From positions 1-64,000 of IMG/VR virus record IMGVR_UViG_3300021137_000001: a stretch of DNA of 64,000 nt, one strand, 5' to 3'. A model generated the notes under the pieces. The model made no database searches, was not told the origin of the DNA, and saw nothing but the letters and a program-made list of their open reading frames with translations. Positions 8,528-52,701 of the stretch are shown here, piece by piece; the first letter of the stretch is position 1; every line of letters begins with the position of its first letter. The translations under genes and the position numbers were made by a program.

Positions 8528-9241
8528 ATGTTCTTACAAAATAAATATACAACGTGGTATTATGCAATCATTCACCGCGGTCAAGATAGAATATTAACTG
8601 GTTATAAAGAAAATCATCATATTATACCAAAATCACTCAACGGATCAGACGATAAGAGTAATTTAGTTAGTCTAACTGCTCGAGAACATTTAATATGTCA
8701 TTTATTATTAACTAGAATGACTATTGGATCAAATAAACATAAAATGTTGCATGCAGCGTGGGCATTAACTACCTATCGCGATAATAGTAGAGATACAATT
8801 AAAATAACATCACGGCTATACGAATCATTAAAGATAGCTCGCTCTTTAATGATCACTGCTACACAAAGTGGCGAAAATAATCCATTTTATAATAAAAAAC
8901 ATTCTAATGCTACCCGCATTAAAATGTCACAATCTGCATCAAAACCAAAATCACTTGCATGGAAAGAATCTGCATCAACTAATAGAAAAGGAGACGGCGG
9001 TAGTTTCTTTGGTAAAACTCACTCGGATTCTCAAAAAGAAAAATGGAAAACAGACCCTCGAAGAATTCATATGGGTGCAGAAAATGGATTTTATGGTAAA
9101 ACTCATACTGATGAACAGCGACAAAAGAAACGTGAGGAAAAACTTGCAGCTTCTAAGAAAATATGTTATTATTGTAATAAGAGTGTAGATGCAATGAATT
9201 ATGGGAGATGGCACGGTGATAGATGTAAATCAAAAAAATAG
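8528..9241 (+). CDS. HNH homing endonuclease with NUMOD3-like repeats
   Basis: ENHHIIPKS...NLVSLTAREHLICH; repeated FYGKTHS/FYNKKHS; TATAAATA at 8502-8509. Confidence 0.8.
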   Translation: MFLQNKYTTWYYAIIHRGQDRILTGYKENHHIIPKSLNGSDDKSNLVSLTAREHLICHLLLTRMTIGSNKHKMLHAAWALTTYRDNSRDTIKITSRLYESLKIARSLMITATQSGENNPFYNKKHSNATRIKMSQSASKPKSLAWKESASTNRKGDGGSFFGKTHSDSQKEKWKTDPRRIHMGAENGFYGKTHTDEQRQKKREEKLAASKKICYYCNKSVDAMNYGRWHGDRCKSKK

Positions 9242-9908
9242 ACAGATAATTAGTGTATCTGGTTTTATTTCAAGTGGCAAAGATACAATTGCAGATTACT
9301 TAGTTGCTGAACATGGCTTTAAACGAGAGAGCTTTGCTGGTACACTTAAAGATGCAGTTGCTACAGTCTTTGGGTGGGATAGAGAACTACTCGAAGGACG
9401 AAGCGCAGAAGGCAGAGCATGGCGGGAAAAAGTAGATCCATGGTGGGCTAAACGCTTAAAGATGCCAAAACTAACTCCACGTTGGGTATTACAAAACTGG
9501 GGCACAGAAGTATGTCGTCATGGTTTCCACACTGATATATGGATAGCAAGTCTAGAAAACAAACTACGTAAAACAAATGAAGATATTGTAATTTCGGATT
9601 GTCGCTTCCCTAATGAAATTAAAATGATTAAGAACATGGGCGGTAAAACAGTACGTGTTAAACGCGGCACTGAACCTGTATGGTATAATTCGGCTAAAGA
9701 TGTTAATGCTGGTATGAAGCGCATCGGCTGGGCATTAGGTAAAGGCGAATTAGATAAGTTAGGAATACACCCGAGCGAATATGCATGGATCGGTACTAAA
9801 TTTGATGTCACTGTTACCAACGATGGTACCATCGAAGACTTGTATGCTACTACTGAAGAACTACTAATATCAGAAATCAGGAACGAGATCGCCCTGAGTC
9901 CAGCCTAG
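9216..9908 (+). CDS. Deoxynucleoside monophosphate kinase (T4 gp1-like); start GTG 9216 or ATG 9201
   Basis: P-loop GFISSGKDT, SFAGTLKDAV, LQNWGTEVCR, ISDCRFPNE. Confidence 0.85.
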   Translation: MIDVNQKNRQIISVSGFISSGKDTIADYLVAEHGFKRESFAGTLKDAVATVFGWDRELLEGRSAEGRAWREKVDPWWAKRLKMPKLTPRWVLQNWGTEVCRHGFHTDIWIASLENKLRKTNEDIVISDCRFPNEIKMIKNMGGKTVRVKRGTEPVWYNSAKDVNAGMKRIGWALGKGELDKLGIHPSEYAWIGTKFDVTVTNDGTIEDLYATTEELLISEIRNEIALSPA

Positions 9909-10811
9909 TCCTTCTTTAACGATAGTGATTTGACAGTTTGCGCAAATAGTTCTTAAATTTAGCGGAGCATTATTCTTTAAGTTACCATCAACATAGTACA
10001 CGCTGAGTTGTTCTTTATACTTTGCCTTAAAGCCACATTTCTCACAGTGTGGCTTTTTCTTATACCCAGCTAATATCCATGTTGGCTTTTGTGGAGCAAG
10101 TTTTCTATTCTTTCTAGCACATGCACTGCATCGAGTGCGATAATGAGTGATGCCATTCCGCTTATAATTGACAGCAGATAGGTTTCTAGTACAGCTTTGA
10201 CATAAAGGACGGTGTGATATTAATTCTAATTTATCTGTAGTTAACTTAATTTTAATTTTTTGTGCTTCTTCTCTCGATTGCAAATTTTCTTGTTCTCTAC
10301 TTAATATTAATGCAATGCGAGCATTTTTCCGCTCTTCTTTTAACTTGAGTTTTTCTTGTTCTTTAATGAATTTATTATTATCTCTAACTTTTTTCTGTTC
10401 ACTCTTTAAAACTGCATGTTTTTCTTGAGTACGGAGTTTACGTATCGCATTAGCCTTTTGCTGATTTCTAATAGAGTCTGGGCTTCGTTTTCTTCCTTTT
10501 GGCCATCCAGGTCCTCGGTGACCGCCGGCCGAAATATTCCACCCAATATTTTTAGACGCTCGTATTTTACCCTCGAGTTCGTAACAATATGTTTCATCAC
10601 CGATTAGTATTATTTCTTTAATAATAGTATCCCATCCATATTTGCTAACAGCATACGCTAGATGTGGATTTGAATGAGTCTTGGCTATTAGTTTAGTAAA
10701 ATGATCAACAATGCGTCTATCATATCTTTTAGATACTCCGATATATCCTTCTAATAAAGGGTTTGTGTGGGATTCTAAGTGAATCCAATATAAGACTGCG
10801 GGTGTCTGCAT
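9870..10811 (-). CDS. GIY-YIG endonuclease domain fused to a Zn-finger/HNH-like domain
   Basis: N-terminal LYWI...GYIGVS; C-terminal CxxC pairs and VDGNLKNNAPLNLRTICANC; ATG at 10811 lies 5 nt after TAAATA. Confidence 0.65.
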   Translation of the reverse strand: MQTPAVLYWIHLESHTNPLLEGYIGVSKRYDRRIVDHFTKLIAKTHSNPHLAYAVSKYGWDTIIKEIILIGDETYCYELEGKIRASKNIGWNISAGGHRGPGWPKGRKRSPDSIRNQQKANAIRKLRTQEKHAVLKSEQKKVRDNNKFIKEQEKLKLKEERKNARIALILSREQENLQSREEAQKIKIKLTTDKLELISHRPLCQSCTRNLSAVNYKRNGITHYRTRCSACARKNRKLAPQKPTWILAGYKKKPHCEKCGFKAKYKEQLSVYYVDGNLKNNAPLNLRTICANCQITIVKEGLGWTQGDLVPDF

Positions 10812-10952
10812 ACTATTATTTACCAAAACCTTTAAAAAGGTATTAGATTTGTTATTACTGCTAAAAATGTTATTAATATATGCGGTATAATACCGTTAAA
10901 TTTTGATGATTTGATAAATATTTTAAAGTATTATAATATAAGGATACTAAAA

Positions 10953-19915: not shown

Positions 19916-20301
19916 TGAAAATTAAAGATATTATTACAGAAACCGACCACCACGCAAGTGCCAAAGACTTGCCAGGCGATCAAGTCGCCGCCCTAAAAGG
20001 TGCTGTAAGTATGCCCGGTATTAGTATGAACAAATCAAACGGTAGTGCGTATGCACAATATCGCTTTGGGCTAGCATTAGCAGGTGCACCGGATTTCCCA
20101 ACTAAAGCAGCAGGTGCAATAGCAGGTGACCCATTACTATGTACATATACAGATGAAGAACTAGCGATGATTAATAGTGCTGCTGATATGGTAGGCGCAG
20201 GTCATGTTAATCGCTTAACTAACAATCGTAGTGAAGAACTTGGCAACACTGGCAAAACTAGCCCAGTACCCACACGTAAAAAGAACAAGTACGGTGTCTA
20301 A
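19915..20301 (+). CDS. Hypothetical head protein
   Basis: N-terminus MKIKDIITE. Confidence 0.55.
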   Translation: MKIKDIITETDHHASAKDLPGDQVAALKGAVSMPGISMNKSNGSAYAQYRFGLALAGAPDFPTKAAGAIAGDPLLCTYTDEELAMINSAADMVGAGHVNRLTNNRSEELGNTGKTSPVPTRKKNKYGV

Positions 20302-20479
20302 ACAATATCGCATTAGGGCACAGGACTATACAGAGTCATTAATCCCCGATGCAATACTTGATGTAAACGACCCAGCATACACAATTGCAAGTGTAACTGA
20401 TGTAAATCAACCGATGAGTTTATCTAACTTCATCGCAACACACAACAATATTAACACATTACCTCCGCAAGCTAAGTAA
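20294..20479 (+). CDS. Small hypothetical protein (probable GTG start overlapping the previous stop)
   Basis: In frame with track ORF 20231..20479; fills the gap before terL. Confidence 0.4.
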   Translation: MSKQYRIRAQDYTESLIPDAILDVNDPAYTIASVTDVNQPMSLSNFIATHNNINTLPPQAK

Positions 20480-20483
20480 TATT

Positions 20484-21401
20484 ATGGCACAAACTCCAGA
20501 CAGCGTCTTAGTTAAAAGACCCTACCAATCAGAAACATTTACAGAAGAACAGCTCTTAGAATTTGCTAAGTGTGCTGACCCAATCACTGGGCCGGAATAC
20601 TTTATGAGTCATTACTTCTACATACAACATCCTACTAAAGGACGTATGTTGTATCAGCCGTTTGAATATCAAAAACGCTTAATTGAAACATATCACAATT
20701 ATAGATTCAGTATCAGTTTAATGCCACGTCAAACTGGTAAATCAACAAGTGCTGCCGGATACTTACTATGGTACGCAATGTTCGTACCCGATGCAACAAT
20801 TCTTATCGCGGCACACAAATATACAGGCTCGCAAGAAATTATGTCACGTATTCGTTACGCATATGAACTATGCCCTGACTTTATACGTGCTGGCGTAACA
20901 ACATACAACAAAGGTAATATCGATTTTGAAAATGGCTCACGTATTAACTCGGCTACAACGACAGAAAACACAGGTCGCGGTATGTCTATATCATTATTAT
21001 ATTGTGATGAGTTCGCATTTGTACGCAGTACAATCGGTCGTGAATTTTGGACTTCTATCAGTCCTACACTAGCAACAGGCGGTAAATGTATTATCACATC
21101 AACTCCTAACTCAGACGAAGATCAATTTGCTACTCTGTGGAAGGGAGCCAACAAATGCGTGGACGATTTTGGAAACGCCACTGCGTTAGGAGTTAATGGG
21201 TTTAAATCATTCCGTAGTTATTGGAGAGAACATCCAGATAGAGATGACACGTGGGCAACGGAACAACGTGCGCAATTAGGTGATGAACGCTTCCGTAGAG
21301 AGATGGATTGCTGTAACGGTGATACAATACTACAATTAGAAATTAATGATGAGCAAAAAATAGTCACAATTGGTGAATTGTTTAATATAATCGATAAATA
21401 A
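20484..21401 (+). CDS. terL: Terminase large subunit, N-terminal half (ATPase) fused to a 30-aa N-intein
   Basis: Walker A PRQTGKS, Walker B LYCDEFAF, ITSTPN; ends RREMD|CCNGDT...IIDK*. Confidence 0.92.
   Translation: MAQTPDSVLVKRPYQSETFTEEQLLEFAKCADPITGPEYFMSHYFYIQHPTKGRMLYQPFEYQKRLIETYHNYRFSISLMPRQTGKSTSAAGYLLWYAMFVPDATILIAAHKYTGSQEIMSRIRYAYELCPDFIRAGVTTYNKGNIDFENGSRINSATTTENTGRGMSISLLYCDEFAFVRSTIGREFWTSISPTLATGGKCIITSTPNSDEDQFATLWKGANKCVDDFGNATALGVNGFKSFRSYWREHPDRDDTWATEQRAQLGDERFRREMDCCNGDTILQLEINDEQKIVTIGELFNIIDK
21309..21398 (+). mobile_element. Split intein N-fragment (30 aa, atypically short)
   Basis: Begins with Cys in a block-A-like CCNGDTILQL, then KIVTIGELF, then stop. Confidence 0.85.
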
Positions 21402-22433
21402 TTGGAGAAGACCAATTTAATTGAGAAATGTATGAGTGATGCAAATTATGTAATATCGAAAATAGATAACAAAAACTATTGTGTATCTAACGGTCAGTTT
21501 ACAAAACATCTCAGAACAAATCAACTCACATATCAAGCATATTATGAAAAATATATAACAGGTACTATTAAATTATGTAGTTGTAGTAAACCATTGACCT
21601 TTTATCAAAAAAATCACACCTATGCTAGCAGTTGCGGAAACCCTGTATGTGTGGGTAAAACTATAGCTAAATCAAAACAATTATGGACAGACGAGCAGAA
21701 GCTATCGGATTCAGCAAACAAGAAAAAAGCTGCCAATGCTAAGACAGACAAACAGAAAGAGCTGCAAGTGGCTCGAGCCAGAGCAACTTTTATGCGCAAG
21801 TATGGAGTTGAATGGAGTTCTAAGTTTGCCGACCAAAAAGAAAAATCTAGAAAGACAAAGAAAGAAAAATATGGTAGCGAAACATATAATAATAGCAAGC
21901 AAACAAGCAATGCCTGGCAAGCAAAGACACTTGATGAAATTTCCAATATAGTATCTAAACGTCGTGCAACTTGTATGGATCGATTTGGGGTCGAAAATGC
22001 TTTAATGAAACCGGAAGCTAGAATAAATTCTGCTAAATCAAATAGTATAGGTCGAGCATTTGTTATGCCATCGGGTAAGGTTGTTGGGGTTCGTGGGTAC
22101 GAAGATACTGTGCTGGCCAACTTATTAAAAGAATACAGCGAATCAGAATTATTATTTGATGATAGGAAAACTATATATAGTTTACCGGTGTTTGCATATA
22201 TAAACGTAAACTTACACCTTGCAACATATTATCCGGATATCTATATTTCAAAAGAGAATAAAATCATCGAAGTAAAAAGCATGTGGTGGTGGAACGGAAA
22301 TGGTAATGAAAAATATAATTCTAGACTAATTAATAATTTACGGAAGAAAGATTCAGTAATAGAGCAAGGATACGAATACGAAGTTTGGTTGTTTAAAAAT
22401 AAAACAGAATATGAGATACTAGCATGGAAATAA
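21402..22433 (+). CDS. Free-standing PD-(D/E)xK-type homing endonuclease between the terL halves (start TTG 21402 or ATG near 21431)
   Basis: GYE...YYPDIYI...IIEVKS; KYG/RFGVEN repeats; Cys motifs. Confidence 0.7.
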   Translation: MEKTNLIEKCMSDANYVISKIDNKNYCVSNGQFTKHLRTNQLTYQAYYEKYITGTIKLCSCSKPLTFYQKNHTYASSCGNPVCVGKTIAKSKQLWTDEQKLSDSANKKKAANAKTDKQKELQVARARATFMRKYGVEWSSKFADQKEKSRKTKKEKYGSETYNNSKQTSNAWQAKTLDEISNIVSKRRATCMDRFGVENALMKPEARINSAKSNSIGRAFVMPSGKVVGVRGYEDTVLANLLKEYSESELLFDDRKTIYSLPVFAYINVNLHLATYYPDIYISKENKIIEVKSMWWWNGNGNEKYNSRLINNLRKKDSVIEQGYEYEVWLFKNKTEYEILAWK

Positions 22434-22765
22434 TGTATAAAGAAAACAAACACGGTTATAAAGTGTTAACTCCTGATGGATATAAATCCTTTGTAGGCAT
22501 TCGGTGTCTTGGCAAAAAAGAAATCCACCGGATTGAATTGGGTACTGACTATTGGATTGAGTGTACATCTAATCATAAGGTATTTGTTAGTGATACTATC
22601 AGAGTTACTGTTGATGAACTTGTAGTAGGAGATATAGTATTAACTAATAGTGGCAATCAACAAGTATCTGCTAAATTAAATTTAGGAAGAGAAGAATTAG
22701 TATACGATTTAATCGAAGTAGACGGTGGGCATCGTTATTATACAAATGGAATATTGTCGTCAAAT
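22424..22765 (+). mobile_element. Split intein C-fragment (114 aa) ending Ser-Asn, followed by Cys+1
   Basis: AAT at 22763-22765, TGT at 22766. Confidence 0.85.
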
Positions 22766-23506
22766 TGTGAATTTATCATCTGGGATGAAACACTTATTAA
22801 CCCAGGGCATTTAGTTGAAATGCAAGGTATTGACCCAATCGAACAGCAAGGACAAATACGTTGGTATAAAAAGCCAAATCCAGCATTTACATATCTCGTT
22901 GCACTTGACCCAAGTCTAGGCACAGGCGGCGACCCAGCGGCAATACAAATATTTGAACTCCCAAGTTTTATACAAGTAGGCGAGTGGCAACATAATCGCA
23001 CACCAGTACAACGTCAAATTGTTATACTAAGTGAGATTACTAAGTACCTTGCTGAAACTGTGCCAGTTAATAGCATATACTATAGCATGGAAAACAACTC
23101 TATCGGCGAAGCGGCATTAGTAACAGTAGCATCGATGGGCGAAGAAAACATTAAGGGAACATTCTTAAACGAACCACGCAAATCAAGTGGCGGAAGTTAT
23201 AGAAAGGGATTTAATACAACACAACGTTCTAAGCTATCTGCTTGCGCAAAGTTAAAAAACTTAATTGAATCTAAACGCTTAACAGTAAACAGTAAGAACT
23301 TAATCTCAGAACTAAAAACATTTGTTGCAAACGGCTCTAGCTTTGCTGCTAAACCCGGCGAAACAGATGACTTAGTAATGAGTGTAGTACTAATGGTACG
23401 CATGGCTATGCTATTGCAATCATACGATGCAAGTTTAGATAGTGCGATGCGTGATACGTTAGATGATTTCATCGAGCCTCTTCCCTGGATAATGACTACA
23501 TATTAG
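22424..23506 (+). CDS. terL: C-intein (114 aa) fused to the terminase large subunit C-terminal half (nuclease)
   Basis: Intein blocks B (CTSNH), F (VYDL) and G (YTNGILSSN|C); then CEFIIWDET, ALDPSLGTGGD, ENN and DDLVM. Confidence 0.9.
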   Translation: MEIMYKENKHGYKVLTPDGYKSFVGIRCLGKKEIHRIELGTDYWIECTSNHKVFVSDTIRVTVDELVVGDIVLTNSGNQQVSAKLNLGREELVYDLIEVDGGHRYYTNGILSSNCEFIIWDETLINPGHLVEMQGIDPIEQQGQIRWYKKPNPAFTYLVALDPSLGTGGDPAAIQIFELPSFIQVGEWQHNRTPVQRQIVILSEITKYLAETVPVNSIYYSMENNSIGEAALVTVASMGEENIKGTFLNEPRKSSGGSYRKGFNTTQRSKLSACAKLKNLIESKRLTVNSKNLISELKTFVANGSSFAAKPGETDDLVMSVVLMVRMAMLLQSYDASLDSAMRDTLDDFIEPLPWIMTTY

Positions 23507-23557
23507 ATTAGATGCCTTTCAACAGACTAGCATAAATAATACTATGAGAATAAAAAA

Positions 23558-25903
23558 ATGCGCGAAATAAACAAAATAGCTGAAGCATTGTTTGAAAAAA
23601 TCCGTGATAGATTTGATGATGTTACTTTAGGTGATGAAAACGCTAAAGCAACACAAGATCCAGCATCCGCACGTTTCTTCAACTTTGATTATACAGTAGA
23701 TGGCGCAAGCCACGGTAACATAACAATTAGCGTTATTGATGAAAATTCACTTAAAGTATACTTTAGTAAAAACATCAGTAGTGATTTAGACGATGAAGAA
23801 AAAGCAAAATGGTATGCGTTTTTACGTGAACTAAGAGAGTTTGCTCGTCGCAACTTATTAAGTTTCGACCCACGTGATATTACACGTAGTACACTAAAAC
23901 ACCGCGATTTGCAACAAGTAAGCAAATCAGACAATACATACAGTAAAGATGAAGTTGCACTTGGCGAAAGCAGAATGCACGGCACAAGTCGTAGTAGTTA
24001 CGAGCAAGATGGTGACGTAAAGATTATTGTACGTCATAGCGATCGAGTAGACCCAGAGCAACGTGGCGCACGTAGTCGTAAAATTAAAGCTCTGTTTATT
24101 GAAACAGCAGATGGCGCACGTATTAAACTACCCCACAACAACTTAAAATACGCACGTGCAATGGCACAACACATATCACAAGGTGGTGACGCTGGTGATG
24201 ATTTTGGGTGCCATATTACTAAAATAGCAGAAGAATGTGGTAAACTACGTCCGTTTAAATCAGCAATGATACGTAGAACATTTGAAGATGCTGAAACACA
24301 ATCAATGGCAGAAGCCGCATTTGAATATCACGGCTTGCTAAACAATACACTTAAAAAAATGGGTGGACGTAAAGGTTATGCTGCTTGTAAAGAAAGTTTT
24401 ATAGCAGATGATGTTTTAATGGATGAATTTGATGTTGATGCATTGCGTGAACGCTTTGTTAAACGATCATTTAATGATAGAATGGAAGACGCACTACCAC
24501 TTGTACAAAAGGCATATAATATGAAAAAATCTAATAACTTCGCGCAACAATTTGAAAGCTGGGCAGACAACGTAAGTGAAGGCACATGGGCTAAACCGGA
24601 AGGTGAAGAACAAGTTGCTGAACTTATCGACTTGTTGATGGAACCGCTAACAGTTGGTATTGATGCAACTAACGCAACTAGCGCACTATATAACTTAGTC
24701 GGTGATGACCAATTGTTTGATCGCTTAGGTGATTTAGCAGAAGAAAACCCAGAAGCTGATGCACGTGATGTGGTTATGGATTGGGTACAAGAAAACATGC
24801 CAGAAATTTATCAACAAGTTATGGCTGCAATTGGCGATGAAGATACAGCCGGTCAACAAGCAGAGCCAGAAATGGATGAAGGCGACACATATGGCGGCAC
24901 ACCGGCTGGTGGACAAGATTATACAAACGTTGAAGAAAACTACGACGATGAAGAAAATGATAGCTGCGATGCAGTACAAGCGGCAATTATTCGTCGTATC
25001 ATAAATTCACATAGTGATTTACTATCACAATACGGACCAGAAGCAATTACAAATGCATCTAGAGATGTTGCTGAATGGGTGGGTAACGTTGAAGAAATTG
25101 GTAGCAGTGATGTTAGCGGTTGGGTTAAAGAAGTTATTAACAACTTAGGCGGCACTGACGAAATTGAACTTGAACGTGACCGTGATGAACCAGAGCAAGA
25201 ATACGGTAGCGATATGCAGTTTGATCAAGACATCGACAGCCCAGACCAGTTTAATCGCGGTGGCGAAATGGATGAAGGCATAGTTGATACTGTTCGCGGT
25301 AAGAACTATAAACGTTTAGCAGATCGCAGTTTTAACAAGGCAATGAACGCACATGATGAGACTTTGAAATATGATTTTGATGACCCGTTCGGCCGCCCTC
25401 CACACGAAAAAGAATTTAGTAAACAAATGGCTAACATGCGTCAACGTGATAACAAAGCAAAATCACTTGGTATCGATGAAGCCACAGGTGCGTTAGATGC
25501 TATTATTGCTAATAACAAAGCGGCAGTTGATAATTTTATCCATCACAATGAATTAGATTATGATTTAGAAAGTGACTTACATGAATATTATTATGACAGA
25601 TTAAGTCATTCTGCACAACGTGATGCAGACGACGAAGGTGAAATTGCACAAATGTTTGCAGATGATTTGGCTGACATGGGTATGATGTCTAACGTTGACG
25701 AAGCAATTGGCGACGATTACGTAAACAAAGATGAAAAATTAAAACGTATGGGTGCGAAAGAATTAAGTCCGTTAGACAAAGCTAGAATTATGCCAAGCCA
25801 AATGAAAGCAATGTCTAAAGGCGACGACGAAGGCGACTTAACAGCATACAACAAACAATTTAATGAAGAAATCGCACAGATGCGCAGAATCGCTGGTATT
25901 TAA
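23558..25903 (+). CDS. Large acidic hypothetical virion protein
   Basis: 781-aa ORF after terL; late motif upstream; repeated xDE[GA] motifs. Confidence 0.6.
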   Translation: MREINKIAEALFEKIRDRFDDVTLGDENAKATQDPASARFFNFDYTVDGASHGNITISVIDENSLKVYFSKNISSDLDDEEKAKWYAFLRELREFARRNLLSFDPRDITRSTLKHRDLQQVSKSDNTYSKDEVALGESRMHGTSRSSYEQDGDVKIIVRHSDRVDPEQRGARSRKIKALFIETADGARIKLPHNNLKYARAMAQHISQGGDAGDDFGCHITKIAEECGKLRPFKSAMIRRTFEDAETQSMAEAAFEYHGLLNNTLKKMGGRKGYAACKESFIADDVLMDEFDVDALRERFVKRSFNDRMEDALPLVQKAYNMKKSNNFAQQFESWADNVSEGTWAKPEGEEQVAELIDLLMEPLTVGIDATNATSALYNLVGDDQLFDRLGDLAEENPEADARDVVMDWVQENMPEIYQQVMAAIGDEDTAGQQAEPEMDEGDTYGGTPAGGQDYTNVEENYDDEENDSCDAVQAAIIRRIINSHSDLLSQYGPEAITNASRDVAEWVGNVEEIGSSDVSGWVKEVINNLGGTDEIELERDRDEPEQEYGSDMQFDQDIDSPDQFNRGGEMDEGIVDTVRGKNYKRLADRSFNKAMNAHDETLKYDFDDPFGRPPHEKEFSKQMANMRQRDNKAKSLGIDEATGALDAIIANNKAAVDNFIHHNELDYDLESDLHEYYYDRLSHSAQRDADDEGEIAQMFADDLADMGMMSNVDEAIGDDYVNKDEKLKRMGAKELSPLDKARIMPSQMKAMSKGDDEGDLTAYNKQFNEEIAQMRRIAGI

Positions 25904-29608: not shown

Positions 29609-29858
29609 TCCTGTAGACGAATTATTGGAACAATGGGAAGAAATTAAACATATTTCTTCCCATATCACCTCAACTGACAACACAGACATATTAGATTATA
29701 TGCGTCGCAAAGCTCAACTCGTGCATTATTCTCAAGAACTACGATTCGCAAGACTAAGCAACGATACTAAAACTGAAGAAGAATATACTGCAAAATTTAT
29801 AGAAGCTTACACTACTTTCAGCAAAGATTTTATTTTTAGGATATTAAAAAATGGCTAG
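29592..29858 (+). CDS. Hypothetical protein
   Basis: ORF overlapping its neighbours. Confidence 0.5.
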   Translation: MQQLTNPVDELLEQWEEIKHISSHITSTDNTDILDYMRRKAQLVHYSQELRFARLSNDTKTEEEYTAKFIEAYTTFSKDFIFRILKNG

Positions 29859-30747
29859 ACATGCACTTAAGGTATTAAATCAACTTAGGGAATATGATAG
29901 CTTCCTTGATAGTTTACATACAATTGTAGACATAGGCTGTGGCACTGGTGAAGATATCACTTGGTGGGCTACATTAGAGTCACGCGATGATACGCCTGTT
30001 CCATACAACTATAATTGTTTTGCTATTGACCGCGACGCCGCTAAATTATCAAAAGTTCCCGATCTTATTAACATACATAAACTTGAAAAAGATTTTAATA
30101 AATTCTGTTTGCCTGTATTGGCTGATTTAATGTGGTCGCACGATAGTTTACAGTATAGCACTAACCCAATTGAAACATTGAAAGTGTGGAATGAGCAAAT
30201 GAATGTTGATGCTATGCTAATTTTAAGCATTCCACAACATTCCGGAGTTGCCGATAACAAATACTATAGTCGTACACATAGCGGATGTTTTTATAACTTT
30301 ACTCCAACCAGTTTAATTTATATGCTTGCAGTTAATGGCTTTGATTGTAAAGATGCATATATGCTTAAAGAATTCAATGATCCGTGGATTCATGTTGCAG
30401 TATATAAATCAGCAATTGCTCCAATGGATGCAACTACAACAACTTGGCTTGATTTGGTTAATTTTGGTTTACTGAATCAAACAGTAGTTGATTCGATTAA
30501 TTCGTATGGTTACTTACGACAAGAAGATATACTATATCCGTGGTTAGATAAAGAAAACTATTATATTGATTATGTAAGTCAATGGACAGAAATCCCAGAG
30601 CAAGCAACACGAACGGTAGATGGTGTTATTAACATTTCCACACCGACTACTACACCGGTTATTAAACAAGGCAAACCTACTAAAAAAAGTACAACGCTAC
30701 TTAAAGCAGTTGGTATAATGCGCCCACCTAAGAAAAAATATGATTAA
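29851..30747 (+). CDS. Class I SAM-dependent methyltransferase-like protein
   Basis: IVDIGCGTG motif I. Confidence 0.65.
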   Translation: MARHALKVLNQLREYDSFLDSLHTIVDIGCGTGEDITWWATLESRDDTPVPYNYNCFAIDRDAAKLSKVPDLINIHKLEKDFNKFCLPVLADLMWSHDSLQYSTNPIETLKVWNEQMNVDAMLILSIPQHSGVADNKYYSRTHSGCFYNFTPTSLIYMLAVNGFDCKDAYMLKEFNDPWIHVAVYKSAIAPMDATTTTWLDLVNFGLLNQTVVDSINSYGYLRQEDILYPWLDKENYYIDYVSQWTEIPEQATRTVDGVINISTPTTTPVIKQGKPTKKSTTLLKAVGIMRPPKKKYD

Positions 30748-31504
30748 TAGAGTTGTGCTTGTAACGGGCGGGTTTGACTGCTTGCATAGCGGGCATATTG
30801 CCTACTTCAAAGCTGCTAAAGCACTTGGGCATATACTTGTTGTTGGAGTAAACAGTGATGCTTGGATTGCTCGTAAGAAGGGCCGAGCATTTATGCCAAG
30901 CACTGAGCGTATTGCTATTATTGAAAACTTAAAGATGGTTGATCATTGTATATTGTTTAACGACGATGATGATACTGCAATCGAAGCAATTAATAACGTT
31001 AAAGCAATGTACCCAAACAGCGAGATAGTATTTGCTAACGGCGGCGATAGAACAGAATATAACATTCCTGAGATGAAATGTGCAGATGTTGCATTTGCAT
31101 TTGGCGTTGGCGGCAAGGATAAGCTCAATAGTAGCAGTTGGATATTAGATGAGTGGAAAGCGCCTAAAACTCTACGAGAATGGGGTTATTATCGTGTATT
31201 ACATGACGTTCCAGGTCTAAAAGTGAAAGAATTAACCATCGATCCGGGCAAGCGCCTAAGTATGCAGAAACATTACGATAGATCCGAGTTATGGTTTATT
31301 GCAGATGGCGAAGCAACTGTTAGCGAGTACAGTATTGTTTACCCAACAACGCTACAAAATCCGCACCTACCCAAAAGTTCAACTCATCGCATACCAGAAG
31401 AACAATGGCATCAACTTGCTAACCCATATACTAGACCATGTCGCATAATTGAAATACAATATGGCGATCAATGTGTCGAAGAAGATATAGAAAGGAAAGA
31501 TTAA
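30740..31504 (+). CDS. Cytidylyltransferase-family domain fused to a cupin (mannose-6-phosphate isomerase type II-like)
   Basis: TGGFDCLHSGH (HIGH-like), GVNSD, NGGDR; REWGYY, LSMQKH, IEIQYG. Confidence 0.8.
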   Translation: MINRVVLVTGGFDCLHSGHIAYFKAAKALGHILVVGVNSDAWIARKKGRAFMPSTERIAIIENLKMVDHCILFNDDDDTAIEAINNVKAMYPNSEIVFANGGDRTEYNIPEMKCADVAFAFGVGGKDKLNSSSWILDEWKAPKTLREWGYYRVLHDVPGLKVKELTIDPGKRLSMQKHYDRSELWFIADGEATVSEYSIVYPTTLQNPHLPKSSTHRIPEEQWHQLANPYTRPCRIIEIQYGDQCVEEDIERKD

Positions 31505-33066
31505 TGTTTGACAATAGTAAGCCAAATATTATTTTATTAACAGATCACAGTGAGCCAATATTCATGCAGAAGTTGTTTGGGATTGCACGAGTTGCATCGG
31601 CCCTACGACAAGCAGGGTATCAGGTGGTTGTTATTAATCATTTGCATATATGGACTCCTGATGAACTTATGACTACACTTAGTCATTTAATTTCATCTCA
31701 CACATTGTTTGTAGGGTTTAATTCTATATTTTATCGTGATTTAGAAAATGTAATTACCCGAGACGATGGTCATATCGAGTGGCCGTTATGTAAACCTGGA
31801 TCTATGTTACCACATGCACACAGTCTGAATCGACGAGTAGTGCAGACTATTAAAACCGCAAATCCTAATTGTAAAATAGTATTGGGTGGTCCTGATGCTG
31901 CTGATGCTAGTTGGAATAAAGATTATGAGTATGTAGTATGTGGTTATGCAGATATGAGTATAGTTAATCTTGCAAATCATTTATTAAATGGCGAAAAACT
32001 TAATAAATCATATAGAAGCATTAATGGATTTATTATAATAAATGATAGTAAAGCAGATGGGTTTGATATAGCAACATCTAGGACATCGTACGAAACATAT
32101 GATGTAGTATTACCAGGAGAAACATTACCTATTGAGATTGCTCGTGGCTGCATATTCCAGTGTGCATTTTGTAGTTATCCATTAAATGGTAAAAAGAAAT
32201 TAGATTTTATTCGTAGTGAAGAATTCTTATATAATGAATTTTTAGAAAACTACGAAAAATATCAAGTAACTAGATATATATTCTCCGATGATACCTTTAA
32301 TGATAGCGTGGATAAAGTGCAGATGATGTATAATGTTTCAAAACGCTTGCCTTTTAAATTGGAATATTGGGCATATATAAGATTAGATTTAATCTCGGCC
32401 CATCCAGAAACAGCTGATTTACTGTTAGACAGTGGCATGCGTGGAGCCTACATGGGTATCGAATCGTGGAATAAAATCACCGGTGAAATCATTGGCAAGG
32501 GCATGGCTAAAGAAAAGCAACTTGCAACCTTACGATACCTTAAAGGTAAGTGGGGAAATCAAATAATGCTACACGGTTCTTTTATGGTTGGCTTACCGGA
32601 AGAAAGCGTAGAATCAGTAACTGACACCTTTAATACTTTAATGACTGATGATTCTCCACTTGATTCTTGGATATTTCGAGGATTTAACATGGAAGATAAA
32701 GCCGCCAAATCAAATGAATTTTACAGTAAGATAACATTAGATCCTAAGGGCTATGGATATCGAATATTAGGCAAACAAGATCATTTGCTAGCATGGGAAA
32801 ATGATTATATGGATTGGAAAAAAGCAACAGAACTTGCCAACCATTTTACATTGTCTGGCAGAACAGTTCGATCTGTTAAAATTGGAGGATTGGGATCATT
32901 TTCTATTGCTAGCCTTGGATTTGATTTAGAATTTTCGACAAATAAATATGTTTCAGACTTTGATTGGAATCAAGTTGATATGCGTAAACAACAGCGAGCA
33001 ACGGAATATAAACATAAATTTTTCAAAGAACTACGTATACCTATTGATATAGAACGAAAAGAATAA
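31504..33066 (+). CDS. Radical SAM protein with B12-binding-like N-terminus
   Basis: RGCIFQCAFC (CxxxCxxC), FSDDTF, MGIES, FMVGLP. Confidence 0.8.
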   Translation: MFDNSKPNIILLTDHSEPIFMQKLFGIARVASALRQAGYQVVVINHLHIWTPDELMTTLSHLISSHTLFVGFNSIFYRDLENVITRDDGHIEWPLCKPGSMLPHAHSLNRRVVQTIKTANPNCKIVLGGPDAADASWNKDYEYVVCGYADMSIVNLANHLLNGEKLNKSYRSINGFIIINDSKADGFDIATSRTSYETYDVVLPGETLPIEIARGCIFQCAFCSYPLNGKKKLDFIRSEEFLYNEFLENYEKYQVTRYIFSDDTFNDSVDKVQMMYNVSKRLPFKLEYWAYIRLDLISAHPETADLLLDSGMRGAYMGIESWNKITGEIIGKGMAKEKQLATLRYLKGKWGNQIMLHGSFMVGLPEESVESVTDTFNTLMTDDSPLDSWIFRGFNMEDKAAKSNEFYSKITLDPKGYGYRILGKQDHLLAWENDYMDWKKATELANHFTLSGRTVRSVKIGGLGSFSIASLGFDLEFSTNKYVSDFDWNQVDMRKQQRATEYKHKFFKELRIPIDIERKE

Positions 33067-33076
33067 TAAATACATT

Positions 33077-34234
33077 ATGCGCAAATTTATTGACCTCATT
33101 TTAGAAGCTGAATCTATTCTTAAACAACAAGTAGTTGATTTAGTACACCAAACCAACGATCCACAAATATTACACAAAGTACTATTAGCGTTAAAGTCTA
33201 CTGACTTAGGTGCAAAACTTAAACAAGTACTTAAACAGGATGTTGATGCTAACAAGATGGTAGATAAGTTGGCTAATTTAATTGTACATGTTGATGGTAC
33301 CGTTGAAGAAAAAGAAAAATTTGCAGACGAATATCCAAATGGCTTTGTTGATACTACTACGTTACTGAATGGTAAGAGAAATAGTTTTACTGATATCATT
33401 GAAGCTGGCTTCCCAGATCGAGTATTTCGTTTACTTGCAATTGAATTAACAGCACAGGGTGTTGGACCAGGGGAAATTGCACTAGCAATACTAAGTCCTA
33501 AGATTAAACATAGTGGCCGTGCAAGTGGTGGCGGCGATTTGAATATTGATGGTAAGGCAGTTGAAGTTAAGACTACAGTAAGCAAAGGTGGCCGCTGGAG
33601 CGACGCACGTAAAGCTAATTTAAACATGCGAGCTATTAGAGATGCAATTGCTGAAATAGTAGTAGCAAACGGTATTGAAATGCCAGCACGAGTAGGGATT
33701 ACGTTTTGGGTTAATACAGTACGTCCTTTGATACAGGATGATTCGACAGCACTCGACAAAGTAACAACAATTATGGCCGATGGATTGTTTTCACATGTTA
33801 ATAACTCAGAGTATAAAGAATCACTACAAACTGGTGACGCCGGTGCCATCAAAGAAGCAGTATTGAGTACAGGATATGATAATTATAAAAAATATGCTGG
33901 ATTTGATGGTATGCTATTGCTAGATGTGCGCGGCGGTGGATCTGCGCAGTATTTTGAAACATACGACGATATGCGCGGTCAAATTAATGCGTCGACTATC
34001 TATCTAATGGCACCAGAATCAGAGGCTATGCCACAAATAGTATTGTCAACTTCGTCAAATGGTGCAGAACAATTTACAGGAATTGCGCCCCAATCCAGTA
34101 AAGAAACAGCAGATGCAATACGTAAGCAAGTAGATAACATAACTGCACCAACTACAGGACTTAGACCACCCGGAACAGTGACAGCTCCACGTGCTCAGAG
34201 GACAGTATCAGACATACCAAGAGAAAAACGATAG
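33077..34234 (+). CDS. Late protein with putative PD-(D/E)xK nuclease domain
   Basis: GVGPGE...GDLNIDGKAVEVK; N-terminus MRKFIDLILE; TAAATA at 33067. Confidence 0.5.
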   Translation: MRKFIDLILEAESILKQQVVDLVHQTNDPQILHKVLLALKSTDLGAKLKQVLKQDVDANKMVDKLANLIVHVDGTVEEKEKFADEYPNGFVDTTTLLNGKRNSFTDIIEAGFPDRVFRLLAIELTAQGVGPGEIALAILSPKIKHSGRASGGGDLNIDGKAVEVKTTVSKGGRWSDARKANLNMRAIRDAIAEIVVANGIEMPARVGITFWVNTVRPLIQDDSTALDKVTTIMADGLFSHVNNSEYKESLQTGDAGAIKEAVLSTGYDNYKKYAGFDGMLLLDVRGGGSAQYFETYDDMRGQINASTIYLMAPESEAMPQIVLSTSSNGAEQFTGIAPQSSKETADAIRKQVDNITAPTTGLRPPGTVTAPRAQRTVSDIPREKR

Positions 34235-34241
34235 ATTCTCT

Positions 34242-34266
34242 AAAAAGGCACTTCGGTGCCTTTTTT
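34242..34266 (+). terminator. Rho-independent terminator
   Basis: AAAAAGGCAC-TTCG-GTGCC followed by a T run. Confidence 0.85.
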
Positions 34267-34267
34267 A

Positions 34268-34296
34268 TTGACTTCATTTTCTAAAGGCTATATAAT
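34268..34296 (+). promoter_or_regulatory. Sigma70-type promoter
   Basis: TTGACT-17nt-TATAAT; ATG follows 6 nt later. Confidence 0.8.
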
Positions 34297-34302
34297 AGTA
34301 CT

Positions 34303-34542
34303 ATGAACTACACATTAGAACAAATTATAGCACTAGCACAAGAAGTTGAAACAACTGATGCAATTGATTGGGAAAACTTGCCGCTTAATAAAGATCATAT
34401 ATATCAAATGGTTGGCAGTCAAGCATACGAACTATATAAGCAACACGCCGATACAGAAGATGGCGAAGCAATTATAGTAGCAACAATAACTAAACTGTTA
34501 GTAGAAAATTTTGTACTAAATCTCAAAGTTGAATCACGATAA
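34303..34542 (+). CDS. Hypothetical protein
   Basis: ORF at the predicted +1. Confidence 0.6.
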   Translation: MNYTLEQIIALAQEVETTDAIDWENLPLNKDHIYQMVGSQAYELYKQHADTEDGEAIIVATITKLLVENFVLNLKVESR

Positions 34543-34555
34543 GGAGTATTACAGC

Positions 34556-34765
34556 ATGGCTAAAACAAATGCAAGTTTTAAATTAGGTAAGATGGTTAAA
34601 TTAACATTGTCTACAATTGATGACAAAGAATCACGTCGTTTATATTTGAAAGCAATGGTTGATGCACAGCAATCATTTATGGAATCAAAGAACAAAAAGT
34701 TCTCTGAATTACGCTCAACACCAGCTAACGGCGGACAAGCACGTCAGCAACAACCAGCTAAGTAA
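34556..34765 (+). CDS. Hypothetical basic protein
   Basis: AAGGAG at 34541 before the ATG at 34556. Confidence 0.6.
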   Translation: MAKTNASFKLGKMVKLTLSTIDDKESRRLYLKAMVDAQQSFMESKNKKFSELRSTPANGGQARQQQPAK

Positions 34766-35310
34766 TGCAGGTACATAATCTTATTGGCGGAGCAAAGCTA
34801 CTTATGTTTGCTCGCCATGCAGATAGTAGAGGCTGGTTTGCTGAAAGTTGGTCGAACAAATGGATGGAAGAATACGGAATTGCAAAACCATTTGTTCAAT
34901 CCAACACAGTGCGCACTGAACTAAAACATACTATTCGTGGATTGCACACACAAATCCCACCTCACCAAACTTCCAAGTTATTGCAAGTTATACGTGGTGC
35001 GGTGTTGGATGTGTTTGTTGATGCACGTGTAGATTCAGTAACGTATGGGCAATGGGGCTCAGTTACCCTAAGCGAAGATACTGCACAATTAATTTACGTA
35101 CCCGATGGATTTTATCACGGCTATATGACATTAGTTGATAATACTATTGTACACTATCAACAGGATGAATTTTACTCATCCGATTCGGATCACGGCTTAC
35201 TATGGAATGATTCAACAATAAACATAGAATGGGGGCTAAATGGTGCAATACCGATAGTTTCTAGCAAAGATACTGCCCAACCGACGTGGAATCTTGCCAA
35301 AAAGTTCTAA
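34765..35310 (+). CDS. rfbC: dTDP-4-dehydrorhamnose 3,5-epimerase
   Basis: DSRGWFAE, TIRGLH, DVFVDAR, YVPDGFYHGY, LLWND. Confidence 0.88.
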   Translation: MQVHNLIGGAKLLMFARHADSRGWFAESWSNKWMEEYGIAKPFVQSNTVRTELKHTIRGLHTQIPPHQTSKLLQVIRGAVLDVFVDARVDSVTYGQWGSVTLSEDTAQLIYVPDGFYHGYMTLVDNTIVHYQQDEFYSSDSDHGLLWNDSTINIEWGLNGAIPIVSSKDTAQPTWNLAKKF

Positions 35311-35315
35311 AAAGG

Positions 35316-35345
35316 TTGACATTGTGCTTGCAAATATGCTATTAT
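35316..35345 (+). promoter_or_regulatory. Possible sigma70 promoter
   Basis: TTGACA-18nt-TATTAT. Confidence 0.5.
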
Positions 35346-35379
35346 TGTAAGATAAACAATTAATCAATGAGGTAACACT

Positions 35380-35535
35380 ATGTTTGAATCAATCGAAATT
35401 AGAAAAGTAGCAAATGGTTTTATTGTAATTTTAAATACCGAAGATGACGCTAAAGAGTTTGTATTTGATACAAGTCGCAAAGCAGTTAAGTTCATTCGTG
35501 AATACGTAGAAGGTAAAGTATCACAACCAGCATAA
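35380..35535 (+). CDS. Small hypothetical protein (51 aa, MFESIEIRKVANGFIV...)
   Basis: Not in the ORF track; GAGG RBS; translated by hand. Confidence 0.65.
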   Translation: MFESIEIRKVANGFIVILNTEDDAKEFVFDTSRKAVKFIREYVEGKVSQPA

Positions 35536-35601
35536 TTTTATCTGTGTTATATGCTAAAATAAATACCATATAGCAGTAAATTCAACTAAAAGGAACATTC
35601 A

Positions 35602-36630
35602 ATGTCAAAAAACGTACTCGTAACGGGTGGCGCAGGTTTTGTAGCCCATCACGTTATTGAAAACTTACTTAGAAATACTGATTGGAATATTATCAGTCTT
35701 GATCGCTTAGATTTCTCAGGCAACTTAAATCGCCTTGCAGATATGATGGATCAATTTGATGCGACAACTAAAAAACGTGTACGGGTTGTGCATCACGATT
35801 TACGTGCAGAACTTAACTCAATGTTACAATATGATTTAGGTGATGTTAATCTTGTATTACACTTAGCGGCAGGTTCTCACGTTGATCGCAGTATTGCCGA
35901 TCCAATGAGCTTTGTGCTTGATAACGTTGTAGGTACTTGTAATATTCTAAACTATGCACGTACACTTCCTAACTTAGAACGCTTTATCTACTTCTCAACA
36001 GATGAGATCTTCGGCGCAGCTCCTCCTGGTATTAATTATGGTGAGCGCGACCGTTACAACTCAACTAACCCATACTCTGCTACTAAAGCAGGCGGTGAAG
36101 AACTTGCAGTTGCATACGAAAATACATATAAAATGCCAATCTTCATTACACACACGATGAACGTGTTTGGTGAAAGACAGCATCCAGAGAAATTTATCCC
36201 AATGTGTGTACGTAAAGTATTAGATGGTGACACAATTACTGTACATAGTGATGTTAGTCGCACAGTAGCAGGTAGTAGACATTATATCCATGCCGCAGAC
36301 GTTGCAGATGCAATGCACTTCTTGTTAAACTTAGATGATGCTAAACTTACTACTGACTTTGGCGGCGCCAAATGTCCTAAGTTCAACTTAGTAGGTAAAG
36401 AAGAAATCGATAATTTAACGCTTGCTAAAATTATTGCGCAAGTACAAGGCAAAGAACTAAAATACGAATTAGTGGATTGTCATAGTTCACGTCCAGGACA
36501 TGATTTACGTTATGCATTAAGTGGTGACTACATGCGCAGTTTAGGATGGGAACCAAAGTATTCATTAAGCCAACGTATTGGTGAAGTAGTTGAGTGGACA
36601 CTTGCAAATGAGAGATGGTTAAGATGCTAA
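35602..36630 (+). CDS. rfbB: dTDP-glucose 4,6-dehydratase-like (extended SDR)
   Basis: TGGAGFVA, LAAGSHVDRS, STDE, PYSATK, RPGHDLRYA; TAAATA at 35570. Confidence 0.88.
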   Translation: MSKNVLVTGGAGFVAHHVIENLLRNTDWNIISLDRLDFSGNLNRLADMMDQFDATTKKRVRVVHHDLRAELNSMLQYDLGDVNLVLHLAAGSHVDRSIADPMSFVLDNVVGTCNILNYARTLPNLERFIYFSTDEIFGAAPPGINYGERDRYNSTNPYSATKAGGEELAVAYENTYKMPIFITHTMNVFGERQHPEKFIPMCVRKVLDGDTITVHSDVSRTVAGSRHYIHAADVADAMHFLLNLDDAKLTTDFGGAKCPKFNLVGKEEIDNLTLAKIIAQVQGKELKYELVDCHSSRPGHDLRYALSGDYMRSLGWEPKYSLSQRIGEVVEWTLANERWLRC

Positions 36631-37286
36631 GAGATATATTTGATAATTTAGATTTACATTGCGGTAAATGGTCTGAGTACTTTGACATTTATGAACGACA
36701 TTTTGCAAAATATCAAAACAGAAAACCAGTTGTAGTCGAAGTTGGTATCTGTAGGGGCGGAAGTGCTGAGATGTGGAAGAAGTATTTTGGTACTGATGCT
36801 ACTATTGTCGGCATCGATGTTGATCCAGTGTCATTTGAACAACGCCATCAAACTGAAGGTTGCATACAAGTAAATGGCAATCAAGGTGACCCTGCATTTT
36901 GGCAAGAGTTTCTAAAAACATATCCGCAAATTGATGTGTTCTTAGACGATGGTGGTCATCATATGAGTCAACAGATTGTTACGTTGCAACAAGTATGGCC
37001 ACATATTGTTAATGGTGGTGTTTATATGTGTGAAGATACACATACTGCATACTGGCCAGAATATGGCGGCGGACTTAATAACCCACGTAGCTTTCTTGAA
37101 TATGCAAAACAAATTTCAGATACAATGAATGTTAATTACTATCGTGGCAATGACCGTCACCCTGATAATATTGCACTTGCTAAATTCTTTAAAGAACTAA
37201 CCGGCATGCATTTTTATGATAGCATTGTAGTAATGGACAAAAATGTCCGTAAAGAACAAATTCTTGTAACGAGTACACCAATATAA
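36615..37286 (+). CDS. SAM-dependent methyltransferase (Methyltransf_24-like)
   Basis: VEVGICRGGS, IDVFLDDGGH, GGVYMCED. Confidence 0.75.
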   Translation: MVKMLRDIFDNLDLHCGKWSEYFDIYERHFAKYQNRKPVVVEVGICRGGSAEMWKKYFGTDATIVGIDVDPVSFEQRHQTEGCIQVNGNQGDPAFWQEFLKTYPQIDVFLDDGGHHMSQQIVTLQQVWPHIVNGGVYMCEDTHTAYWPEYGGGLNNPRSFLEYAKQISDTMNVNYYRGNDRHPDNIALAKFFKELTGMHFYDSIVVMDKNVRKEQILVTSTPI

Positions 37287-38023
37287 TGAAAAACACAGTC
37301 CTAGTAACATCGGCAGTATATACTAACTATGGTATATACGATACTAAACAGCGTATACAACAAACATTAGATACCGTTAAAAGCGCACGTAAGTATATCC
37401 CAGATTGTACTATTATTCTAATTGACAATAGCACTACTGCAATTGCGCAAGACGACAGTACAGAACTAAATGAACTAATTGATATTGTTGATTACTATAT
37501 CGACAATAGTGATGACAAAGACATACAGCACTTCCATAACAATATTACTAATTACGACATTGGTAAGAACTCAATGGAGTGTATTGGTATGTACAAAGCA
37601 CTTGCTTACATGTCGTCTAATGCAGAGATAATGGATATTATTACAAGCTCATCACGCATATTTAAACTTAGTGGTCGTTATCAAGTTACTGATAAGTTTG
37701 ACATTACTAAGTTTGATAATGAAACAACTGTGGACAAATATGTGTTTAAGAAGGCACAAGCAAGTTGGATTGCAGAAGCTGATACCGGTGTAACTACATT
37801 GTTACAAACTCGTCTGTGGTCATTTACTCCGAGTTTGTTTGTTGATACAGTTCAGTTGTTTCAAAACATTCTAAAAAATATGTTTTCTACTATTAATAAC
37901 GGCAAGTACATTGATGTCGAGCATAGTATGGCTAAGTTCATTCCAGCAGACAAGTTAGTTGAACTCGACACAGTTGGATTAATTGGTAATATTGCTCCAA
38001 ACGGTATGGTAGTAGTTGATTAG
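37286..38023 (+). CDS. Glycosyltransferase-like hypothetical protein
   Basis: LIDNS and IFKLSGRY motifs; sugar-cluster context. Confidence 0.45.
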   Translation: MKNTVLVTSAVYTNYGIYDTKQRIQQTLDTVKSARKYIPDCTIILIDNSTTAIAQDDSTELNELIDIVDYYIDNSDDKDIQHFHNNITNYDIGKNSMECIGMYKALAYMSSNAEIMDIITSSSRIFKLSGRYQVTDKFDITKFDNETTVDKYVFKKAQASWIAEADTGVTTLLQTRLWSFTPSLFVDTVQLFQNILKNMFSTINNGKYIDVEHSMAKFIPADKLVELDTVGLIGNIAPNGMVVVD

Positions 38024-38024
38024 C

Positions 38025-39227: not shown

Positions 39228-39228
39228 T

Positions 39229-51680: not shown

Positions 51681-51707
51681 ATACATATAACTAATGCAGA
51701 AGTCCTT

Positions 51708-52610: not shown

Positions 52611-52701
52611 CCGAACAGAAATATCTAAACCGGCCAATGTATATAATTTACATATAGAAAATGACCACAACTATATTGTCGACGGAGCAGTGGTGTCAAA
52701 T
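52597..52701 (+). mobile_element. Split intein C-fragment (35 aa) ending Ser-Asn, followed by Cys+1
   Basis: AAT at 52699-52701, TGT at 52702. Confidence 0.88.

Follow-up and report, generated by a model that had tools for sequence, protein, structure and literature searches.

The split inteins of the terminase large subunit (TerL) known as AceL-TerL, GOS-TerL and Cat (PDB 6DSL) were reportedly introduced by Thiel et al. in 2014, Bachmann & Mootz in 2015 and Stevens et al. in 2018, respectively. Their N-terminal pieces (IntN) measure 25 amino acids (aa) in AceL-TerL and 37 aa in GOS-TerL, and the consensus intein Cat is divided into an IntN and a C-terminal piece (IntC) of 30/104 aa; these inteins splice and are in established use for labelling (PMC11766414). 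In 2009, Dassa et al. (PMC2677866) described, at the GOS 'Terminase' locus, a terminase intein 'fractured at an unusual point'; in the canonical fractured genes (gp41-1, NrdJ-1, IMPDH-1 and others; Dassa et al. 2009), the break falls at the usual endonuclease-domain insertion site and leaves an IntN of 88-105 aa and an IntC of 33-54 aa. Here we analyse a locus in the first 64 kb of the 329,321-bp IMG/VR contig IMGVR_UViG_3300021137_000001; this stretch of 64,000 nucleotides (nt) is called the window below. In it, the TerL of an uncultured jumbo T4-like myovirus is encoded as two pieces, and a nuclease gene lies between the halves of a split intein. We consider it probable (about 0.85) that this is a fractured TerL gene in which a mini-intein at the ATPase/nuclease boundary is trans-spliced and a free-standing endonuclease occupies the break.

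The three open reading frames (ORFs) of the locus all lie where an earlier note on this DNA, made from the letters alone, had put them. The upstream one (ORF A, 20484-21401, 305 aa) carries TerL residues 1-275 followed by a 30-aa IntN: after ...RFRREMD comes CCNGDTILQLEINDEQKIVTIGELFNIIDK and then a TAA stop, so that the predicted ending, RREMD followed by Cys1 and 29 further residues, is borne out. ORF A matches Pfam Terminase_6N (7e-16) and the PHROG terminase large subunit (6e-70). The downstream one (ORF C, 22424-23506, 360 aa) consists of IntC and the TerL C-extein; it matches the PHROG terminase at 9e-46 and Terminase_6C weakly (4e-4, 20.8 bits, under the Pfam cut-off of 22.6), and as a query it retrieves thousands of relatives, including terminases of 519-522 aa without an insert. 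Two of the intein-free TerLs, P0032 and P0033 (519 aa), are 93% identical to the window over ORF A and about 92% over the C-extein, which is collinear with P0032 from residue 276. Both read continuously through the junction (...ERFRREMDCEFIIWDETLI...), and excising IntN, the middle ORF (ORF B) and IntC would therefore restore a normal TerL of 521 aa without adding or losing a residue; the rebuilt junction RREMD-CEF proposed earlier is exact against both proteins.

P0032 matches T4 gp17 (PDB 3EZK) at 4e-51, and the TerL of the window is of the T4 type; in this alignment the splice junction corresponds to the bond between T353 and A354 of gp17. The alignment with the ATPase-domain construct 2O0H ends at query residue 260 and that with the RB49 nuclease domain 3C6A begins at residue 284, so the break lies where the ATPase domain gives way to the nuclease domain. 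Positions 20000-24000 gave no megablast match to INPHARED phages, and the nearest cultured TerLs, those of the jumbo phages Phosso, PA5oct and Atu_ph07, are each less than 50% identical. The sequence at the locus is 100% identical across contigs of four metagenomes and in independent JGI and ENA assemblies, so it is no assembly artefact, and phage contigs of up to ~340 kb show the same arrangement. As in the fractured genes of Dassa et al. 2009, the two halves keep their original order and orientation and a split intein marks the break; a short leader precedes the free-standing endonuclease gene that separates the halves, and the downstream half overlaps the end of this gene. The canonical genes differ in the position of the break, which here follows intein block A, leaving blocks B, F and G to IntC.

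Both halves of the intein match the solved Cat TerL intein. IntC, with block B TSNH, block F VYDL and block G SSN ahead of CEFIIWDET as the earlier note described, is 114 aa long when counted from the first ATG and 111 aa from a conserved ATG at 22433 that overlaps the endonuclease stop as TAATG. Its match to Pfam Intein_splicing in ORF C is weak (1e-5, under the Pfam cut-off). By phmmer it matches PDB 6dsl_B, 'Consensus engineered intein CatC', at E=7e-12, and the alignment crosses the splice site (...GIVSHA/CE in CatC, ...GILSSN/CE here, the slash marking the splice site); judged on the C-extein side, where CE is shared, the insertion point is the same as that of the Cat TerL intein. The lone 30-aa IntN found no match in the PDB by phmmer. 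A profile of 16 allelic IntN sequences, searched against the same database, found 6dsl_A, 'CatN', at E=6e-7, with the next best match at 0.13. IntC also matches VidaL (PDB 6VGV) over its whole length, at E=3e-6; this is weaker than the CatC match, and VidaL, likewise a naturally atypical split intein with the same short-N/long-C architecture, is a more distant relative.

Judged from these matches, the pair in the window (30 / 111-114 aa, Cys1/Cys+1) is a new allelic member of the AceL/GOS/Cat family of TerL inteins. It shares with them the host protein, a T4-type TerL, the start of the C-extein (CE...) and the break after block A, with an IntN of 30 aa against 25, 37 and 30 aa and an IntC of 111-114 aa against 104-122 aa; the Cys1/Cys+1 chemistry is that of AceL-TerL. 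In contrast, its IntC is only roughly 35-40% identical to CatC (counted by eye on the alignment), its penultimate residue is Ser (SSN) where theirs is His (SHN), residue 2 of its IntN is Cys, and the intervening gene is a nuclease of the family DUF7487.

The catalytic residues of the intein are conserved. Across 35 relatives consisting of IntC and the C-terminal part of TerL, whose intein parts are 30-92% identical to that of the window, T48 and H51 of block B, V93-Y94-D95 of block F, S113, N114 and Cys+1 (C115) are invariant; Cys1 is the sole invariant residue of IntN among the 16 alleles. Overall, these IntC and IntN alleles share just 30-70% identity. The catalytic set of a class 1 (HINT) intein is thus present and invariant in every residue save the penultimate His, which is replaced by an invariant Ser. 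A penultimate His is not strictly needed in all inteins, and the Ser, being invariant in the clade, is probably tolerated. The closest relative of the locus, L085, has an IntC that is 92% identical. Compared with it, the ratio of nonsynonymous to synonymous substitution rates (dN/dS) is 0.048 for IntC (dS 0.94), indistinguishable from the 0.045-0.063 of the exteins. Taken together, the invariant catalytic residues, the dN/dS values and the identical locus in four metagenomes argue against a pseudogene, an artefact or mere docking. L085 has no endonuclease gene; its IntN ends in its own stop, a 13-nt spacer follows, and IntC begins in another frame. The split therefore belongs to the proteins themselves.

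To follow the site through the clade, we compared five parts of the locus by tblastn with 84 related loci and with 64 loci fetched by means of the endonuclease. Most TerLs of the clade have an empty site. Two (P0241 and P0274) carry a contiguous mini-intein at the same site, tiled by IntN and then IntC; four (L008, L021, L023 and L085) carry the split intein without an endonuclease; and many carry the split intein with DUF7487, L001-L004, L020, L031, L042 and L087-L091 sharing the three-gene arrangement. All 54 IMG/VR loci with a DUF7487 gene at least 42% identical have the gene in this break. At the same break there is an HNH+NUMOD3 gene in L011, L051 and L086, and a GIY-YIG gene in L059, L076 and L080. 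Decayed copies of DUF7487 also occur: L134, L138 and L154 have a frameshifted gene, L136 and L145 a broken one, and L142, L143, L147 and L023 a truncated one. Intein-free phages of the same clade lack the endonuclease, and hundreds of alleles with the architecture of the window exist in public metagenomes. The HNH-bearing locus L086 has an N-extein nearly identical to that of the window (by eye) and a C-extein 94% identical, and yet the two inteins share just 41% identity and L086 has an endonuclease of another type, indicating that the cassette moves independently of the host gene.

Several other features of this clade were observed. In the endonuclease-free allele L021 (2565-2840), the IntN ORF is 92 aa long and its tail (...WYNNGVVNKQF...GFVRGRFIKK) resembles the C-terminus of the HNH+NUMOD3 endonucleases of L011 and L051; from this resemblance, the tail appears to be what is left of a deleted endonuclease, now joined to IntN. 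There are at least three intein sites in the same TerL clade, at about residue 86/87 (Walker A), at about residue 174 (Walker B, LLY/CDEF) and at 275/276. L023 and L076 have inteins at all three, L001 has a contiguous intein at the Walker A site plus the split one, and L091 has an additional intein that contains LAGLIDADG.

The earlier note had read the middle ORF as a 343-aa PD-(D/E)xK protein. The ORF is present (21402-22433), and E...PD...ExK is invariant in 30-46 homologues (E25, P69-D70 and E81-x-K83 in A4 numbering). The length of 343 aa, in contrast, arises only by a mechanical count from a TTG abutting the IntN stop; gene callers and homologues begin at the ATG at 21432, giving 333 aa, and the fold matches are weak. 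Residues 113-324 match Pfam DUF7487 at E=5e-31 (108.8 bits against a cut-off of 27). The protein is made up of a Cys-rich N-terminal part with five invariant Cys, three helical repeats with the signature K(Y/F)G(V/S)E, and a C-terminal nuclease-like domain. The AlphaFold2 models are confident, with a predicted local distance difference test (pLDDT) score of 89.5 over the full length and 92.8 over the nuclease domain, and with this domain the top Foldseek matches are influenza PA-N, RecE and Cas4 SSO0001 (E 0.017-0.1, template modelling (TM) score 0.2-0.4). The phage homologue Va1_269 also matches TnsA-like_N at 9e-6, and a phage homologue annotated as 'HJR family nuclease' matches both DUF7487 and TnsA-like_N. 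On the motif and the modelled fold, we assign the middle ORF tentatively to the PD-(D/E)xK nucleases.

Dassa et al. 2009 name only GIY-YIG and Vsr-like endonucleases in fractured genes (PMC2677866), and we found no mention of DUF7487 in the literature searched. The EDxHD/Vsr-like I-Bth0305I (PDB 3R3P; PMC3239194) is likewise a free-standing endonuclease inside a fractured phage gene, and it has the same bipartite layout of an N-terminal DNA-binding region and a C-terminal restriction-endonuclease-like domain; its motif is EDxHD, however, whereas the motif here is the canonical E...PD...ExK. The endonuclease sequence had no match at E<=10 among PDB chains, 3R3P and Vsr included, and neither Vsr nor I-Bth0305I is among the Foldseek matches. 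Together with the different motif, these results rule out the Vsr-like/EDxHD family for the middle ORF.

Comparison of the window with L085 (1960-2140) delimits the inserted cassette. With the cassette come the last IntN codon and its stop, a 30-nt leader and the endonuclease ORF; the final codons of this ORF extend into sequence common to the endonuclease-free allele. For about 100 nt on each side (21294-21395 and 22425-22514) the two loci are 91-98% identical, compared with 71-78% beyond, and IntN has almost no synonymous changes (dS 0.06 against about 0.9 in the flanks). This raised identity could be a co-conversion tract or a constraint on the target site, a reading of the alignment that is weakened by similar high-identity patches elsewhere in the gene. 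Regulatory candidates found no support. A leader hairpin at 21400-21417 has only 6 bp and is weak, the z-score of the whole region is not significant (-0.23), and a similar AATTG...CAATT motif recurs in a large number of related cassettes without being common to all of them; GATAAATAA, conserved where the cassette begins or ends, was dropped as a T4-type late promoter because the window shows no enrichment of TATAAATA (5 found, 11.9 expected). Promoter-like sites in the endonuclease leader are no more frequent than in shuffled sequence.

In the mechanism that we propose, three proteins would be made from the locus: TerL(1-275)-IntN (30 aa), the endonuclease (333 aa) and IntC (111-114 aa)-TerL(276-521). 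The short IntN would dock on the near-complete IntC and complete the HINT fold. Class 1 splicing would then proceed by an N-S acyl shift at Cys1, trans-thioesterification to Cys+1, cyclisation of the terminal Asn and an S-N shift, yielding a 521-aa TerL with the native ...RREMD-CEF... junction and releasing both intein pieces. The putative endonuclease would probably cut endonuclease-free intein-coding alleles during co-infection and be copied in by repair; homing of this kind would explain both the presence/absence polymorphism and the decay seen in relatives.

Other explanations of the locus must be weighed against trans-splicing. The intein halves might no longer splice and might serve as high-affinity docking modules in a two-chain TerL; a fragmented ribonucleotide reductase assembled via interaction domains derived from a mobile element provides a precedent (PMC3045599), the break falls exactly between two independently folding domains, so that a non-covalent motor is conceivable, and the penultimate His has given way to Ser. 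Docking alone, however, would not constrain catalytic residues, and the invariance of Cys1, the block B Thr and His, the block F Asp, the terminal Asn and Cys+1 at 30-40% identity therefore counts against a two-chain TerL, as does the splicing known for its homologues Cat, AceL and GOS (PMC11766414). We regard it as very unlikely. A continuous TerL produced by RNA splicing or frameshifting, named in the earlier note as the outcome that would overturn its reading, might be expected given that endonuclease genes of T4-like phages often sit in group I introns. Yet even under permissive filters the Rfam 15 covariance models, introns included, gave no match at E<=1 in 20000-24000, ORF A and ORF C lie in different frames, and both flanks encode intein blocks under purifying selection; in L085, where the stop, the spacer and the frame change persist, nothing is left to splice out. 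That the interruption is removed as a group I or II intron with an endonuclease ORF, or is bypassed by a frameshift, is hardly credible.

The middle ORF might also be a domesticated nuclease or DNA-binding protein (acting, for example, in packaging, host DNA degradation or the exclusion of competitors) and not a selfish gene. It is intact and conserved at most loci, the 46 aligned homologues share many invariant residues, the TAATG overlap couples its translation to that of IntC-TerL-C, and distant relatives stand free by other genes, as in Vibrio phage Va1, where the neighbour is the capsid gene. Against this, the gene is present or absent at one precise point between close relatives (the window and L085), HNH or GIY-YIG genes can take its place there, frameshifted and truncated copies exist, and intein-free phages of the clade are without it. 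Polymorphism, replacement, decay and absence are the signature of a mobile, dispensable element, and we think domestication unlikely. A dead or mis-assembled terminase gene might be suspected from the three ORFs and from the inspection of 64 kb of a 329-kb contig, but this has next to no probability in our view, with identical copies in four metagenomes and in independent assemblies, dN/dS of about 0.05 in all parts and the same arrangement on other large phage contigs. Trans-splicing of a fractured TerL remains our preferred reading, and several points weigh against it: we infer the splicing itself from sequence; a second intact TerL may lie elsewhere on the 329-kb contig, of which the analysis covered 64 kb; the -1 residue of the N-extein is Asp, which may help or hinder splicing; the penultimate intein residue is the clade-wide Ser and not the usual His; and the leading Foldseek matches of the endonuclease, for the full model and the domain, are all PD-(D/E)xK nucleases but weak (E 0.007-0.1, TM 0.13-0.42).

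Table 1. Positions of the split TerL locus, the second split gene and further nuclease-like genes in the window.
Feature	Positions	Strand	Basis
TerL N-extein, 275 aa, ATPase domain, ends ...RFRREMD	20484..21308	+	Pfam, PHROG, collinear with P0032 residues 1-275
IntN, 30 aa, block A only (CCNGDTIL...), plus TAA stop	21309..21401 (coding nt 21309-21398)	+	16-allele profile against CatN
Endonuclease cassette, 1,029 nt	21396..22424	+	Bounded against endonuclease-free L085 (20 nt there)
Weak 6-bp hairpin AATTGG/CCAATT, between IntN stop and endonuclease start	21400..21417	+	Fold
Free-standing putative homing endonuclease, 333 aa, DUF7487	21432..22433	+	Pfam, motif, AlphaFold2, Foldseek
IntC, 111 aa from conserved ATG 22433 (114 aa from ATG 22424)	22433..22765	+	6dsl_B and VidaL matches
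TerL C-extein, 246 aa, RNase H-like nuclease domain, opens with Cys+1 (CEFIIWDET...)	22766..23506	+	Pfam, PHROG, P0032
UvsW_N + DEAD/ResIII, then long IntN after ...VMVDE/CFDSDSKVLTP	50664-51680	+	Intein_splicing 9e-9
Middle ORF of the UvsW locus, 300 aa, motif YIVDFVDH...VVEVKPK	51708-52610	+	Weak TnsA-like PD-(D/E)xK match
Short IntC (...IVDGAVVSN/CHMAKAD), then Helicase_C	52597-53436	+	UvsW locus
HNH+NUMOD3 free-standing endonuclease-like gene	8528-9241	+	NUMOD3 4e-13
GIY-YIG endonuclease-like gene	9870-10826	-	Weak match 9e-4
NUMOD3-containing ORF, endonuclease-like	58378-59067	-	NUMOD3

A second fractured gene lies in the window at 50664-53436 on the plus strand. It encodes a UvsW-like helicase and, unlike TerL, has the canonical split with a long N-terminal and a short C-terminal intein piece (Table 1). 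With its further endonuclease-like genes, the genome seems rich in selfish nuclease genes. A block of genes for the modification of sugars and nucleotide sugars (29851-40804, plus strand), next to the genes for UvsX and gp32, includes a mannose-6-P isomerase/cytidylyltransferase, a B12-type radical SAM protein, a GDP-mannose dehydratase-like epimerase, C-methyltransferases and a glycosyltransferase; for a T4-like phage, such cargo in this position is unusual.

A TerL in two annotated genes was also observed in a cultured phage, Escherichia phage kaaroe (MN850574.1, 18884-21995; Krischvirus RB49; locus L092). The product of kaaroe_25 (583 aa, annotated as 'hypothetical protein') runs from the TerL N-terminus to Walker B (...FIYIDE/C) and continues with a short IntN and an in-frame, Cys-rich TnsA-like nuclease, and that of kaaroe_24 (459 aa) begins with a long IntC (...NNVESHN/CAF) followed by the remaining TerL. 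This makes kaaroe a cultivable phage whose atypically split intein occupies another TerL site than the one in the window. Several further T4-like coliphages give the same two-piece TerL match.

Arrangements of this kind were already known, as the earlier note recognised; they date back to 2009 (Dassa et al., PMC2677866), and relatives of this intein serve as tools (PMC11766414), engineered since 2014; they are abundant in metagenomes. Current understanding is unchanged, in that the principle goes back to the 2009 publication and its practical use to 2014. Modestly new are the uncharacterised endonuclease family DUF7487 tied to this break, the conserved penultimate Ser, and the second fractured gene, UvsW. 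DUF7487 may be an undescribed family of PD-(D/E)xK homing endonucleases specialised on the atypical TerL intein and both the maker and the maintainer of its split, and the SSN intein may be functional and possibly orthogonal to Cat and AceL; we see about as much reason to accept these proposals as to doubt them. DUF7487 comes into question as the agent of the unusual split point because its close IMG/VR relatives, 54 out of 54, sit in this break.

Split inteins with a short IntN are useful for protein semisynthesis, since the small piece can be made chemically, and each new natural allele is a candidate tool; this one combines Cys1/Cys+1 with an unusual penultimate Ser. The sites compared here, which are empty, contiguous, split, split with one of three endonuclease types, or decayed, form a complete natural series for the breakage of a gene by a homing endonuclease, and this series suggests for the uncharacterised Pfam family DUF7487 a concrete role that can be tested.

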